Below are positions 30,326 to 37,187 of a stretch of DNA of 64,000 bases, piece after piece (positions within the stretch are counted from its first letter, which is position 1; each line of letters begins with the position of its first letter). The notes beneath the pieces are model-generated. The model saw nothing but the letters and a program-made list of their open reading frames with translations. It had not been told where the DNA came from and made no database searches. Position numbers and translations under genes: made by a program. The stretch comes from Selaginella moellendorffii. Lineage: Eukaryota > Plantae > Lycopodiophyta. Location of the stretch: positions 4,146,880 to 4,210,879 of the forward strand of contig NW_003314261.1 in NCBI RefSeq assembly GCF_000143415.4, in the 5' to 3' direction.

Positions 30326-30995
30326 TCACGCTGAGGCTTTAGCTTTACTCGATTGCAAGCGTTGCTGCAACTTTAGAACCTGGAAGACGAGAGAAAAAAA
30401 AAGGAGTTTGATTGGAAAAGAAAACGAGAAGAACAAAGATTTTGCAATGCTCTACCTCTTCTCTTTTGGAGCCTTGTTGATCCTCTAGGCTTTTCAATGA
30501 TCCGTCAAGTCTCCTCCTATGAGGAAAAGAAAAGAGAAAAGAAAAAGTGAGAAGAAAGCTCCGAGCTATGGAGGATGTGCTTGGACTGACAGTTCTCCTG
30601 TGATATACTCGATGCGCTTGTTCACGTTGGCCTTGGCTTCCACCAGGTCTTGCTTCACGAGCACTGGTCCAATGAGCTTAAACACATTGGCGTCCTCTTT
30701 GAGAAGCTCTAGTTCCTGGGAAGCATGATTCACGAGAAGAAACTTTCAAGTTCTAGAAGAGAAATGCGATTCCTAGGCACGGACCTTGATCACCATCTCA
30801 TTCTCCCCTTGCTGGATCGTGTACTGCCGCCTCACTTGGTGATTCTTGCTAATGTCTGTATCGCCCGATCGGTCTTGTTAGAGCTGGAATCCCTGCAACA
30901 ATCGCGATCGCGATCGCCATACCTTTCTGGATCTTGTTGAGCTCCGACGCTCGCAATTCCAGCTGCCGCTGGAGCTCCTTCACCGCGGCCGCCAT
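30326..30995 (-). CDS. PFD6: Prefoldin subunit 6, multi-exon
   Basis: MAAAVKELQRQLE...DISKNHQVRRQYTIQQGENEMVIK|ELELLKEDANVFKLIGPVLVKQDLVEAKANVNKRIEYI. Confidence 0.93.
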
Positions 30996-31355
30996 GCGAT
31001 TCTCTTCTCCAAGAACTCTGGAGCCCTAAAATATGTTCCCAGGATTTTAGGGTTCTTGGATCTCTTCTCTGGGCTGGAGTGCAGCGCTTCAATCCGGCTC
31101 GACGCGGATTCCATGACCGCATTATAGGTAAGCGCGCTCCAGATCTTCTCTCCCGGCGCCAAGAAGAATGGCATTGCCGCCTTCCGGGAGCCTCTGGACT
31201 GCGACGAGCAGCGTCTTCGCGTGGCAAATCCAGCAACAAACGGAATTCTGCGCGGAATTTCACGACTGGTAGCAGCAGCAAAGATCCCTCTTCTTCTCCG
31301 ATCGATCGATCAGGGAAGAAGAATCAAGAACAAGAAAATATTTTCTCTCGGCCCA

Positions 31356-34066
31356 ATGGAGGAGGTGCTGCGCGCGCCGTCCTTCCTCATTGACGACGGG
31401 CTGTGGAACAAGCTCAACACGGAGCTCCGCGCGGCGTGTCACTGGTGCACGCACCACCACACCACCACTCCAGCCGAGGCGGCCAAGCAGCTGGAGCGTG
31501 GTGAGGGCTGGCCTCGCGACTGGATCTCCAGGAAGGTGAAGAACTCCACCCGGCAATTCGGCGGCCTCTTCATCTGCCCGGCGCCCGACTGCTCGGGCCA
31601 CTCCAACACCAAGGGGGAGCGCCGGAGGCGGTGGTTTTGCCGGTTTTGCATCAATCGCCACCTCAACGTGGATCTCAAGAGCTTCTTCCAGCTTGACGAG
31701 ATCCAGGGGAAGTGGATCCAGATACCAAATCTCTACTGCTGGCACTGCCGAGCCAAGACCGGGGAGGCGATGTGCGTGAATTGTCCACAGAAGAACGCCA
31801 AGAGGCCCAAGCGCGCGAGGGACTCGTCCGCCACCACTGCTCTTGGGCTGCCCCGGACCTTGCTCGCGTCTCCACAGCTCGGGAATGGGATGGCCATGCT
31901 CGGAGGATCCGGGGACGTGCACTACGATGGAGTGAATGGTGATGCCAAGCAGCCGGAAGGTGTCGATGTGGATGAAAGTAGCTTCCAGGCCGAGGTTCAC
32001 CCAAACTTGGCGCTCTCGCAGCCGACTCCCACCATGGCCGATCTTCGCTTCTTGGCTGGCGCTGGGCCGAGCCATCAGAGAGGTTTTTTTCCGGAAAAGG
32101 CAGGTATTGTTTCGCGACTGGATCTTGTTTCTTACTCACCTTGTTTTTTTTTTCTCCAGGCTCTCCTTGGTCGCGACGCGTTATCAGTTGTTCCAAATCT
32201 CATAGAGTTCTTGAACAACTCTACGACACCTTTTCATGCCACTTGTGAGAGCACCATCTGGTGACTTCGTGTAAGTTCTCTCCCGGTACTGATGCGGGGT
32301 TTTACTTATATCAGTGGAGGCAAGGAGGCATTTGCTGGAATCAGGCTTCCAGCAGCTGAACGAGTGTGAAGAGTGGGAGTTACAGCCAGGTGGTCGCTAT
32401 TTCTTCACGCGAAATATGTCCTCGATATTTGCTTTCGCCATTGGTCGGAAGTACGCATCTTCTTCTCATCTTTGTTCCTTTTCCATTTACTAATGCATGG
32501 CTTGATGTCAATGTGCAGGTATAAACCCGGTGGTGGCTTTCATGTATTGGCTGCTCATACAGATAGTCCCTGTCCAAAGCTTAAACCAGTATCTGCGGCT
32601 ACTAAAGGTGGTTTTCTACGTGTTAGAGTCCAAGCTTATGGGACTGGACTATGGAATACCTGGTTTGACAGGGATTTAAGTGTCGCCGGGCGGGTTTTAC
32701 GTAGAACAAAAAATGGAGAGCTTATTCATGATCTTGTTCGTGTTCGAAGGCCAATATTGCGGATCCCGAGTTTGGCGTTTCATATGGACAGGTCTGTCTC
32801 GCCTTTCTTGACACTCTTGCTCAAACTATTTTCTCTACAGGTCAGACAGTATGAAGCAAGATTTGGAGTCCCAACTAGCTCCAGTCCTTGCTACTCAAAT
32901 TGAAGCAGAACTGGCTGTTTCTTGTGACTCGGAGTCGCCGGGTGAACATGAAGGAAACCAAAGCAACGACGTCCACCACCCTCTTCTTTTGCAGGTAACT
33001 CTTTGCCCTGGCATTCAGCCAGTCACACTTTTTCAGGTGCTCGCAGACGAGCTTCACTGCGATGTCAGTGAAATCGCGGATTTTGAGCTGAGCATTTACG
33101 ACACTCAGCCTGCATGCATCGGAGGTGCTCGTCAAGAGTTTGTGTTTTCGGGAAGGCTGGACAACCTGGCGTCGGCGTTCTGCGCTCTCTGGGCTCTGCT
33201 GGATACGTCTTCTGAACCGCTGTCGATGCTGGATGAGGATTACATCCGCATGGTTGCACTTTTCGACAATGGAGAGGTATTGTTTTTGTAATTTGTTTTT
33301 TCGAACTTTGACTTTACATGGGAGATTTCAGGTTGGATCAGAAGCCGTTCAAGGAGCTGGTCCACAGACCATGTTCCAGGCCATGATGAGGATATCACGA
33401 TGGCTGGCTCGCGGTTCTACAAGCGAAGGCGTTGTAGAGCGAGCAATCCGACGCTCGTTTGTTGGTACGCATCATACAGAGTCTGAGGAAGGATTGTGTT
33501 TAACTTTTTGTTCTTTTCTTTTCCTTGTGTTGTGTGGCAGTATCTGCAGACATGGCTCATGCTTTGCATCCCAACAATGCCGAGAATGATGTGGAGCACA
33601 ACCAGCCAAAACTCCACGACGGTCTCGTAATCAAACACAATGTAACACAGAACAATGCGACAGACGCGATCTCTGCGTTTCTGTTCAAGGAGGTCGCCAA
33701 GCGGAATTGTATTCCGACACAGGTCAGCCTCGACTCGTCCACGCTCTGTGTCTCTCATTTTTAACGCTTTCTCTTGCGCGCAGAACTATTCCGTGGTCAG
33801 TGACGTTGGATGCTGCTCGACCATCGATTCAGTGCTGGCGGCAGGATATGGCATCCGTTTGGTGGATTGCGGTCTTCCACAGCTCGCGATGCACAGGTTT
33901 GCTCCATGATTGGGAATTATATCTTTCGCGCTGGCTGACTCTCTGGGGGCTTTGCAGCGTGCGAGAGATGTGCGGCACGGAAGATATTGACGCCGCCTTC
34001 CGCCACTTCCGAGCTTTCTTCCAAGAGATCGCTTCTCTCGACGATCAGCTCCGAGTGGACGCCTGA
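31356..34066 (+). CDS. M18 aspartyl aminopeptidase-like protein (probably catalytically impaired) with an N-terminal Cys-rich zf-4CXXC_R1-like domain and NLS
   Basis: Open frame from ATG 31356 through CHWC/CPAPDC/FCRFC/YCWHC/CVNC and KRPKRAR into LIEFLNNSTTPFHAT. Then YFFTRN, AHTDSP, LWNTWFDRDLSVAGRV, SGRLDNL, FDNGE|VGS, SADMAH, QLAMH|SVREMCG. The peptidase call is firm. The fusion is inferred, and there is an alternative in-frame ATG at 32034. Confidence 0.8.
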
Positions 34067-34510
34067 GAAATAGCCGGCGAGACGTACCAACGTGGGACGC
34101 CATCATCATTCTCAGCTTCTTGAGAGGTAAAAAAAAACTCTTCCTCTCTCCGAAACTCCGAGCGTTTCTCTTTTTTTTTCTTTCTCGTCTTTCGTCTTTC
34201 GTCTCTCTTTTTCTCACCATAGTCGTCTTTCTCTCCACATAAGCTGTGTACTACTGATAAGCGTCACAGGTATGACATAAGCATGGCCGTTAGCTATGCG
34301 CTTGTCATGTCCTTACACGATTCTTTTCCTCTCTTTTTGCTCTCACTCCGGCCTGGCGTCCTTGTGATTCTTCCGTATGTCTACTCCTGACGCAAGACTG
34401 GACGACAAAGTGTAACGCGCAGAGACGCGACGCGAGCATTCGTCCAGCCTCTGTCGCAAGGACTCGTCCAAGCTAAGCATCTCGAGCTTGCTACAGGGAT
34501 AACCGCGCAA

Positions 34511-34536
34511 GAGAGAGAGAGAGAGAGAGAGAGAGA
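34511..34536. repeat. (GA)n microsatellite
   Basis: About 12-13 GA units. A (TTC)n run also occurs at about 35279-35300. Confidence 0.9.
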
Positions 34537-35935
34537 CCCCGTTCAAAGCTAGATCGAGAGAGTGACTTCCAAGAGAGAAACGAAACAACCAACTATGGGG
34601 AATTGTTGTCGATCATGGAATCTTGAGCTCCATGTCTCTAGACTATTGCATCACAAGCCAAGTTTAATCGAATTTATTTTGCTAGTAGACCCCTCTCTGG
34701 CTGGATGGAGGATGGAAGATGGAAACGATGGAAGTTGGAGCTTCAACATCAAACACACTGGACAGTTCCTCCTTGTACAAACAAACAACAAACCCCTTCA
34801 AAGTTGCGTATGTGAAATGATGCGTGCACGCCATGCATGGCATCATCAGCAGCCCATGATGCCATCTCAAAGGCGTGGGGTCTCTTCACTCTCTTTTCTC
34901 CTCCATTTTAGCACCACACCACACAATCTAAAAGCTATGCTGCCATTCATTCTTTCGCCCATGCCCATGCCCACCACCTTTTCTCTCTCTCGTACGGTAC
35001 TGGGGGCATCTTGTCGCATATACCCCCACGCGGACGGTGCACGCTTTTATAATTTCACCATGGCCCACGTTGGCTCCAGTTATTATATGCGCGAATGCAA
35101 ACAAACAATTAAGCTTCTCCAGCTTTGATCAATCTATGTGTATTCTAGAACATCCTATTCTTCTTGTAGCATCTTCGCGACGAATCTCCTGCTCGCCCCC
35201 GCAATTGCCTTGCTTGTAATCAAAGGGGCCGGTGTTTACATCAATCGCTTGGATCTGTCATGCTCAGCCGACACATTTTTCTTCTTCTTCTTCTTCTTCT
35301 TTTTCGCGAGCTTGTCATCGAGAACTCCAGAGAGGAATAAGCCCACACTACTTATAGATGGAATAATCCACCTTCGAGTAGTGTGTGCCAATCCTTCCTT
35401 TCGTCTCGTCTCTGTCAACGTCGCGCTGGAGCGGAAAAACTATATGCACAAGAGAGAATGATCGTCGAGAGTGATTATCTACGCAACGAAAGAGAGAGAG
35501 AGAGGAAAAGAAAATGCTGCTTACCCGGTTAAATAGCTCGCGGATCAATCAATCAGCAAAGAGATGATCGCCTTTAATGGAGTATGTATATAAATCCGGT
35601 GGTCTCGTGTTCTTCCTTTAGGCATTTTTCCTGGCACTCGGGTAATATCCCCCTCCTCCCCCAGCTCTCCACGAATCAACCCATTCCTCCTCCATGCTCT
35701 TTCTCTCTGACTCGAGCCTTGCTAGATTCAATGCCGCTGCTGCTGCTGCTGTCCGTTTGCGTCATTTAATCTTCTGCGAGAAGACAGAAGACGAATATTA
35801 AAAAAGTATCGTCGATCGCGAGCAAGCAATTCTTTCTCTCCCAGTCTCCCAAAGTACGAAAGACTCGAACAATTCATAGTAGAATTCATCACTCCACCTC
35901 TTCCCTCTCTTCTAGTTCTTCCCCTCTATCTAGCC

Positions 35936-37187
35936 ATGGGAAGGCAGCCATGCTGTGAGAAAGTAGGACTTAAAAAGGGGCCATGGACTGCAGAGGAGGA
36001 CAGGAAGCTCATACACTACATCACCAGCCATGGGCACGGATGCTGGCGTGCAGTTCCTAAGCTAGCTGGTAAGCAAAGAAGGCATTGCCAAGAGAAAAAG
36101 GAACAAAACCTTACCTCTTTGTAGTTGAATTGATCGATCTCTCATCTCTCACTCGACGAAATTCGCAGGACTCCTACGCTGCGGAAAGAGCTGCCGCTTG
36201 CGGTGGACGAATTATCTCCGCCCCGATCTCAAACGCGGTGTTCTCACGGAGCAAGAGGAGCAGATGATCATCGATCTGCACGCTGTCATGGGAAACAGGT
36301 ACCATCTATCAGGAGAAATCCAAAAACGAGCTTTGGAAAGCATAGTCACCGGTTGGCATGAAATTTTGTGTCTCAGGTGGTCTCGCATTGCGGCACAGCT
36401 CCCCGGCCGGACGGACAACGAGATCAAAAACTACTGGAACACCAGGATCAAGAAGAAGCTCCGGCAGATGGGGATCGATCCAATGACTCATCAGGCCATC
36501 AGCAGCAGCACCGCCAGCGGCCTGAGCTGCGTCACCGAGGAGGCGTCGCAGGCGGCGTCGCCATCCTCGTCCACACCTGCGACCATCCAATTCACCAGCA
36601 GTCAGCAAGCGCAGGAGAACTTAGCGGAGACCATGATGAACCTGCTCGTCCAGGAGATGCCAGGCGCTGACACCTCCGCTCACGAGTATCTGGTCGTGCC
36701 ACCCTCCTCGTCCGCTTCCTCTTCTTCTTCCTCCGGGAGTTCCTGGCAGCAACTGGCAATGCTCATGCCTCCCCCTCGCTTCCCGCAGCCAGAGGCCGCA
36801 GCACAGCTCCCGTGCTGTCTCCAAAAGCAGGAGACGGACTCCAGCGAGCAGCAGCAGCAGCAGCAGCAGCAATCCACGAGTACGACTGTTGCATGCGTGA
36901 AGCGGGAAGTGTCATCGTCGCCGTCCCTGTGGGAGATCATCAACGGCCCCAGCAGCTTCCTCGACGACGAGTCGGCCTGCTCGCCGAGTTACTTCCAGCA
37001 ATGGAGCCACCCTGGTGCTGCTCAGCACCCCGTGACCGTTGCCAATGCCTCCAGTTCACATGATCCCTGGCGTTCGCACCCAGCTTTTGTTGAAAGCCAG
37101 CACCAGCCTCAAGAGGAAGGCGTCCGCTACCCACACTCTTGCCAAGAGGAGCTCCAGAGGCTGGCTGCCATCCTCGATGACATGTAA
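35936..37187 (+). CDS. R2R3-MYB transcription factor (exons 35936-36068, 36169-36298, 36377-37187)
   Basis: [22 protein letters not shown]; [24 protein letters not shown]; [28 protein letters not shown]; GIDPMTH motif; poly-Q encoded by (CAG)n at about 36849-36872. Confidence 0.97.

Follow-up and report, generated by a model that had tools for sequence, protein, structure and literature searches.

In human aspartyl aminopeptidase (DNPEP), a member of the M18 family, Glu301 activates the attacking water, and Lys374 and His349 give the acidic preference at P1 in a pocket formed by strand β15 and two loops; Lys374 has been named a marker of acidic specificity (PMC3472314). In the TET peptidases the equivalent glutamate is the rate-governing general base, and metal on the second glutamate of the pair stabilizes the quaternary structure of the dodecamer, so that chelation dissociates the particle (PMC4745047). 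The plant enzyme AtDAP2 is an active dodecamer (PMC5638241). Here we describe a ten-exon gene of the clubmoss Selaginella moellendorffii, at 31356-34066 on the plus strand of a 64,000-nucleotide stretch of contig NW_003314261.1 (assembly GCF_000143415.4, positions 4,146,880 to 4,210,879; this stretch is the window, and all positions below refer to it). The gene encodes an M18 homologue in which the general base is replaced by glycine, all metal ligands are kept and a conserved Cys/His-rich head precedes the M18 half. We think it probable that the product is a non-catalytic, metal-stabilized M18 oligomer that displays this head domain.

The Selaginella protein is like canonical plant DAP2 (AtDAP2; SmDAP2a, which is SELMODRAFT_442726) in its Pfam family, its fold, its five metal ligands, an M18 identity of 55-65% and its place in the DAP2-type group. 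It is unlike them in that the canonical proteins have FDNEE, QRYAT, VRND and CGSTIGP and a transit-peptide-like N-terminus, whereas the Selaginella protein and its clade have glycine at the base position, changed loops and the Cys/His head. Human DNPEP (4DYO), the nearest structural match, has its five ligands, His170, His349 and Lys374 all represented by equivalents, but Glu301 has become Gly, Tyr381 Asn, Arg408/Asn409 Val/Ser and Gly414/Gly418/Pro419 Cys/Asp/Ser (offset numbering, see below). More distant precedents are found in other families and folds: Tma108 (M1) and Ebp1/PA2G4 (M24) are aminopeptidase folds retained for binding and not for cutting (PMC11266112), although Ebp1 has lost most metal ligands and the Selaginella protein keeps them all. 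The complex of S. pombe Ape4 with Nbr1 (7DDE) also pairs an M18 dodecamer with a zinc-finger module, and Ape4 aligns with exon 4 and with our model; there, however, the module is the ZZ finger of an autophagy receptor and binds an active enzyme in trans, whereas the Selaginella arrangement is a cis fusion to an apparently dead enzyme.

The first-pass annotation, made from the letters of the window, had described the aminopeptidase half as a pseudoenzyme that lost its catalytic glutamate and its substrate pocket and kept its metal ligands. We placed the residues with phmmer alignments of single exons against the human and bovine DNPEP and S. pombe structures, converting the chain index of 4DYO to the numbering of the DNPEP paper by an offset of 10 that was deduced from Asp346, His349 and His94. 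Every motif quoted as changed (FDNGE, QNNAT, CCSTIDS, VVSD and HPNNAENDV) or as retained (AHTD, RLDNL, the second Glu, SADMAH and MHS) lies where it had been read, and in the alignment to DNPEP and the plant paralogues glycine occupies the column of the EE pair's first Glu. The positions concerned, all on the plus strand, are as follows.

33271-33273, plus strand: Gly543 (codon GGA), in place of DNPEP Glu301, the general base and first of the EE pair
32556-32558, plus strand: His335 (in AAHTDS), equivalent of the metal ligand His94
33160-33162, plus strand: Asp506 (in RLDNL), equivalent of the metal ligand Asp264
33274-33276, plus strand: Glu544 (codon GAG), equivalent of the metal ligand Glu302
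33549-33560, plus strand: SADMAH, with Asp592, equivalent of the metal ligand Asp346, and His595, equivalent of His349 in the P1 pocket
33892-33894, plus strand: His686 (in MHS), equivalent of the metal ligand His440
in LAFHMDR, plus strand: His410, equivalent of His170, which is loop-swapped from the adjacent subunit
plus strand: Lys620, equivalent of Lys374 in the P1 pocket
33648-33662, plus strand: QNNAT, with Asn in place of Tyr381 of the P1 pocket
33567-33593, plus strand: HPNNAENDV
33793-33804, plus strand: VVSD, replacing VRND
33811-33831, plus strand: CCSTIDS loop, replacing CG(S/T)TIGP, with Cys660 in place of Gly

The loss of the catalytic glutamate thus stands, with Gly543 opposite Glu301 and all five ligands of the binuclear metal site matched. 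The loss of the substrate pocket was borne out in part: Tyr381 and both pocket loops are altered, these being the same two loops that help to form the P1 pocket of DNPEP, but Selaginella retains the equivalents of Lys374 and His349. Given what the glutamate does in DNPEP and TET, we infer that the protein lacks catalysis. The GGA codon at 33271, flagged earlier as needing confirmation in raw data, is covered by a DNA contig of run X1 (31287-33291) and by RNA contigs of runs X4 and X6 with no alternative letter; one contig end of run X20 reads TTCGACAATGGAG. These DNA and RNA contigs, together with the orthologues described below, rule out an assembly or sequencing error at codon 543.

By profile and by its predicted two-domain fold the protein is an M18 homologue. 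Four exons match Pfam PF02127 above its cut-off of 24 bits (exon 4, 108.8; exon 6, 67.8; exon 8, 47.5; exon 9, 31.3). An AF2 model of residues 250-722, built from a 43-row alignment, has a pLDDT of 83.5 and a pTM of 0.87, and its top Foldseek match is human DNPEP (4DYO; E 3.6e-52, TM 0.87/0.90, 43% identity), followed by bovine DNPEP (3VAT) and S. pombe Ape4; the top hits range from E 1e-49 to 1e-52 with TM 0.87-0.90. Lower-confidence stretches of the model fall after GE, in the HPNN..., QNNAT and CCSTIDS loops and in a loop or insert at 160-205. Because the general base, a defining feature of the active enzyme, is missing, we class the protein as a putative M18-derived pseudoenzyme rather than an aspartyl aminopeptidase: this homologue lacks a residue central to catalysis, yet it is conserved, under purifying selection and expressed.

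We then asked how widely the glycine is shared. A search with exon 1 found relatives with M18 exons downstream, namely a Logan contig (L001) and two contigs of Sphagnum type (L004/L005), all with Gly in place of the first Glu and Cys in place of the Gly of CG(S/T)T. Cluster representatives were scanned with the stop-free stretch 32842-33276 (exons 5-6 including one 42-nt intron), and the motifs were surveyed in 120 close plant relatives and 150 cluster representatives. GE occurs in the closest representatives only, one representative has PE, and EE is present in every other in which the motif was found; across both sets, glycine at the base position is confined to one clade, as GE or, in one member, GK. 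The clade comprises Sphagnum fallax (two genes), S. troendelagicum, Physcomitrium patens (two genes, with several isoforms of 705-755 amino acids), Selaginella, Diphasiastrum complanatum and two moss transcripts, the named members having been reached by a word search with a Sphagnum protein. The same word search listed over 100 further streptophyte DAPs, and these have FDNEE, SADMAH.HPN[YF], QRYAT and CGSTIGP.

In an alignment of the clade (A2) all members have Gly at the base position and Cys for the loop Gly, and all lack Tyr381. The five ligands are kept throughout except in one Sphagnum sequence, which has Lys for the second Glu, and the Lys374 position is Lys or Arg in every member. The equivalent of His170 is kept only in the two clubmosses and is lost in all moss members and in L001; that of His349 survives in Selaginella and in part of the Sphagnum sequences but nowhere else in the clade. 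In a second alignment (A4) the base position is Gly in 8/8 clade rows against Glu in 35/35 canonical rows, and the position of Cys660 is Cys in 8/8 clade rows against Gly in 94% of canonical rows. The 35 canonical sequences have 133 columns with at least 90% conservation. The clade retains 94 of these, and at 11 others at least 85% of its members carry a different residue; only Glu543Gly and Gly660Cys are uniform changes.

Two members deserve separate description. L001 (Logan SRR33208241, 590-3739) is a full orthologue, with the head, ten M18 exons, FDNGE and CCSTVDS; it has Cys at the His170 equivalent and AAHMDS for AAHTDS, and it may come from a liverwort, hornwort or early moss. The S. troendelagicum sequence (P0166) is the most degenerate member, reading FNSGK, in which the second Glu ligand has become Lys, and MHCVQE for MHSVRE, and it has the longest terminal branch in the clade (0.47-0.53); its metal site may be on the way to being lost too, or the gene model may be poor.

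An M18 protein without the glutamate might nevertheless hydrolyse peptides with another base, whether metal-bound hydroxide, Glu544 or the invariant Cys660, and so act as a slow enzyme or one of new specificity. The intact metal site and the equivalents of His170 and Lys374 in Selaginella fit such an enzyme, and the uniform change of Gly to Cys beside the pocket looks selected and not random. However, the pocket loops are remodelled, and the glutamate that has been lost does not vary among the 35 canonical rows of A4 or among the other plant DAPs and representatives in which the motif was found. In the M28 peptidase of Aeromonas, exchange of the equivalent Glu151 for Ala or Gln abolishes activity. 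Since the counterpart of Gly543 is described as the residue that activates water in DNPEP and TET (PMC3472314, PMC4745047), we regard continued hydrolysis as improbable.

The glycine-bearing sequences form one monophyletic clade (SH-aLRT 100), which has a long stem (0.40-0.49 changes per site) and lies inside the land-plant DAP2-type group, its exact sister not being settled by the tree. Its inner branching follows the species tree, with the clubmosses set against L001 and the mosses and with L001 beside the mosses; because this branching follows the organisms, we conclude that one old duplication took place before the moss-clubmoss split. After the split the two clubmoss branches measure 0.21 and 0.26 in the clade, compared with 0.27 and 0.30 for the canonical paralogue in the same two genera, while in mosses the rate of the clade is about double that of the canonical gene. 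The ratio of nonsynonymous to synonymous substitution (dN/dS) was estimated by the Nei-Gojobori method on a pair of full-length moss transcripts (L006 and L007; dS 0.70). It reaches 0.087 in the M18 half, compared with 0.044 in the head, 0.034 in the linker and 0.043 in a canonical moss pair. The closer pair L006 and L007 was used because Selaginella compared with L001 or Sphagnum has saturated synonymous sites (pS > 0.75), which makes that dN/dS unusable; the same comparison gives a dN of 0.19, with no broken exon and all ten exons intact. Both halves of the protein are under strong purifying selection. Variation within Selaginella, where the coding sequence differs among runs at eight synonymous and two conservative sites, fits selection as well.

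The suggestion that selection went on maintaining the fold although the base had gone is thus upheld by the monophyly of the clade, the low M18 dN/dS, clubmoss branches no longer than those of the active paralogue, spliced transcripts and the structural match. Simple decay, for which dN/dS near 1 without expression had been named as the sign, was rejected on dN/dS far below 1, intact orthologues and expression. A decaying duplicate, or a glycine that is itself a sequencing artefact, would find some encouragement in one DNA sample that may have lost 1 nt at 31613. That sample is run X1, a different accession or haplotype with about 0.5% divergence, and its contigs are without one G of a G5 run in exon 1 (31613-31617). 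The run has further homopolymer length differences at 31280, 32143 and 34129, all of them non-coding, and the deletion at 31613 is in neither RefSeq haplotype model; it is likely a sequencing error. Given also open reading frames (ORFs) that are intact in at least five genera, dN/dS of 0.03-0.09, spliced transcripts in three studies and GGA in independent DNA and RNA contigs, decay or artefact is barely conceivable.

Upstream of the M18 half, exon 1 encodes the head, a basic cluster that resembles a nuclear localization signal (NLS) and a linker.

31356 to about codon 146 of exon 1, plus strand: Cys/His-rich head, amino acids 1 to about 146
31437-31460, plus strand: CHWCTHHH of the head
31638-31661, plus strand: CRFCINRH of the head
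31737-31784, plus strand: CWHC..CVNC of the head
31800-31820, plus strand: basic cluster KRPKRAR, NLS-like (KRAKRAK in mosses), followed by a variable linker

The head has the pattern CHWCTHHH ... CPAPDCxGH ... CRFCINRH ... CWHCx7CxNC. Over residues 1-150 the protein shares 87% identity with Diphasiastrum and 83% with Physcomitrium, and an 11-row alignment of the head (A3) has 78 invariant columns and a mean column identity of 83%. Head and basic cluster are present in all full-length clade models and transcripts, the moss transcripts L006 and L007 each carrying one 743-amino-acid fusion ORF, and wherever enough DNA or protein is available the head stands upstream of a GE-type M18 domain. That head and M18 half might be separate genes was rejected on the joint 32099|32160, seen in three runs, on identity with the RefSeq model and on these 743-amino-acid moss ORFs. 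Profile searches of the head gave no Pfam family at E <= 0.1 and only noise up to E 10, its AF2 model is unusable (pLDDT 45), and its language-model neighbours (zf-4CXXC_R1 and PHD-like, scores at most 0.85) are leads only; neither the profile search nor these neighbours found similarity to ZZ. A divergent head with 56% identity occurs in two further contigs (L002/L003, Logan ERR6564749/48; P0002) that end before any M18 exon. In P0002, Cys79 of CPAPDC is replaced by Tyr (PDYAGH), and because of this Tyr, Cys79 may not be a metal ligand.

The reading that we favour is as follows. In an old DAP2-type duplicate, dating from before the moss-clubmoss split, the general-base Glu gave way to Gly and the P1 pocket loops were remodelled, with Tyr381 lost and CGST turned into CCST, while the five ligands and the whole fold were kept; its M18 body is fused in one frame to a conserved Cys/His module and the basic NLS-like cluster. 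Without a general base it should hydrolyse no peptide at a useful rate. The M18 body would then serve as an oligomeric scaffold, presumably a tetrahedral dodecamer like its relatives, and the metal site may have been kept because, as in TET, the two metals hold the oligomer together. Such an oligomer would present many copies of the head, probably in the nucleus because of the conserved basic cluster, to a partner.

A different use of the same site would be to read N-termini, the dead pocket binding Asp or Glu N-termini through the two metals, Lys620 and His595 without cutting them, with the head as the output. This would fit five ligands kept for more than 400 million years, a Lys or Arg throughout the clade at the position of the acidic-specificity marker Lys374 (PMC3472314) and the His349 and His170 equivalents kept in Selaginella, and it has a precedent in the M1 homologue Tma108, which binds nascent N-termini with its pocket (PMC11266112). 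We nevertheless hold it to be unlikely, since Tyr381, the QRY loop and the CGSTIGP loop of the P1 pocket are altered throughout the clade, most mosses have lost His349 and His170, and in the predicted model pLDDT is lowest in just these pocket loops.

The first-pass annotation had offered a dominant modulator of the normal enzyme as a possible role: subunits would join those of canonical DAP2 (or DAP1) in mixed dodecamers and so tune their activity or poison it. Hetero-dodecamers have been reported for TET peptidases (PMC4220976), 94 of the 133 canonical conserved columns are kept in the clade, and a canonical paralogue (P0174 cluster) is present in the same genome. Against mixing stand the long stem branch (0.40-0.49 changes per site) and the head, which is more tightly constrained than the M18 half, although a subunit that acted only as a poison would have no need of this. 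The role also appears less likely because the conserved NLS-like cluster is set against the plastid-type N-termini of canonical DAP2, so that cluster and head point to another compartment (PMC5638241; the Selaginella location being predicted). Taken together, these points make a modulator highly improbable.

Several observations weigh against the non-catalytic scaffold that we favour. The five ligands and the Lys374 and His349 equivalents kept in Selaginella would fit ligand binding, or residual or altered chemistry, equally well. Mosses have lost the His170 and mostly the His349 equivalents that the clubmosses kept, and function may differ by lineage. The head fits no named zinc-finger family (PHD, zf-4CXXC_R1 or ZZ) by profile or by confident structure, and the nuclear location and the partner of the head are guesses from one basic cluster. 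Finally, the deletion in run X1, if real, would break the frame after codon 86 in that sample.

The clade is more than 400 million years old, and through this time the base has been absent, the metal site kept, the body held under strong purifying selection and the head conserved. It is tempting, though doubtful, to see in it an undescribed class of plant nuclear proteins, one that the first land plants would already have had and that ferns and seed plants would since have lost. In such proteins a silent metal-loaded M18 dodecamer, either a sensor or holder of acidic N-termini or a 12-valent hub, would be joined to a new and very strongly conserved Cys/His module for nucleic acid or chromatin. 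The case is readily testable in a model moss with easy gene targeting, where one can ask why a dead two-metal peptidase keeps its metals.

The spliced model is letter for letter RefSeq XP_024524713.1 (P0281), annotated "probable aspartyl aminopeptidase" of Selaginella moellendorffii, an annotation that the present analysis corrects. The protein of the other haplotype, XP_024527699.1 (P0165), differs by D156E and V623L, and an older model of that haplotype, SELMODRAFT_86972, is the "SmDAP2b" of Table S3 in Park et al. 2017 (PMC5638241). SmDAP2b is therefore the other haplotype of this gene, and its placement in the DAP2 lineage agrees with ours; we infer that the two Physcomitrium clade genes are PpDAP2b1/b2 of the same paper. 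The models of Park et al. are short (519 amino acids) and without the head domain, the gene counts there as an ordinary DAP2 paralogue, the moss and clubmoss copies are treated as recent independent duplications, and the text makes no mention of lost catalytic residues or a zinc finger (PMC5638241). In the history of the gene family, a single old duplication followed by loss takes the place of recent independent ones. Pseudoenzymes occur in many peptidase families, but M18 has no entry in a 2024 review devoted to metallopeptidase homologues that are inactive (PMC11266112), and no description of an M18 pseudoenzyme was found in the full text of open-access papers, where absence is not proof; the gene had been annotated and placed in the 2017 tree, and its status as a dead enzyme is apparently new.

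The gene model was built from three-frame translation and spliced RNA contigs over 30500-34700, in a region of plant DNA with very short introns. As had been read from the letters, the exons have no stops or frameshifts, and once joined they give an intact ORF of 722 amino acids. All nine introns are present as joints in RNA contigs of runs X4, X6 and X20 (three runs from three studies), eight with GT..AG ends and one, intron 1, with GC..AG.

31356-32099, plus strand: exon 1, 248 codons; head, basic cluster and low-complexity linker; ORF and RNA contig 31101-32097, which continues into the M18 exons
32100-32159, plus strand: intron 1, 60 nt, GCAGGT..CTCCAG; joins the head/linker exon in frame to the first M18 exon; joint in X4, X6 and X20
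32160-32244, plus strand: exon 2, M18; RNA joints
32315-32450, plus strand: exon 3, M18; RNA joints
32519-32791, plus strand: exon 4, M18; RNA joints; Pfam PF02127 match
32841-32994, plus strand: exon 5, M18; RNA joints
33037-33276, plus strand: exon 6, M18; RNA joints; Pfam PF02127 match
33332-33464, plus strand: exon 7, M18; RNA joints
33541-33722, plus strand: exon 8, M18; RNA joints; Pfam match
33784-33896, plus strand: exon 9, M18; RNA joints; Pfam match
33958-34066, plus strand: exon 10, M18; RNA joints; TGA stop at 34064-34066

Exons 2-6 hold His335, His410, Asp506, Gly543 and Glu544, and exons 7-10 hold Asp592, His595, Lys620, QNNAT, VVSD, CCSTIDS and His686. Intron 1, if retained, would still be in frame and without a stop, the frame being open over 31302-32258.

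Head-to-head with this gene lies a minus-strand neighbour at 30566-30995, with introns at about 30715-30783 and about 30856-30922 (CT..AC joints) and with the peptides MAAAVKELQRQLE... and ...VFKLIGPVLVKQDLVEAKANVNKRIEYI..., which resemble a prefoldin subunit of beta type. One X6 RNA contig spans both genes, so that either their 5' ends overlap or the assembler merged them. Downstream, a gene recognized by eye as R2R3-MYB-like occupies 35936-37187 on the plus strand, with its start at 35936 and the ORF of its second exon beginning at about 36198.

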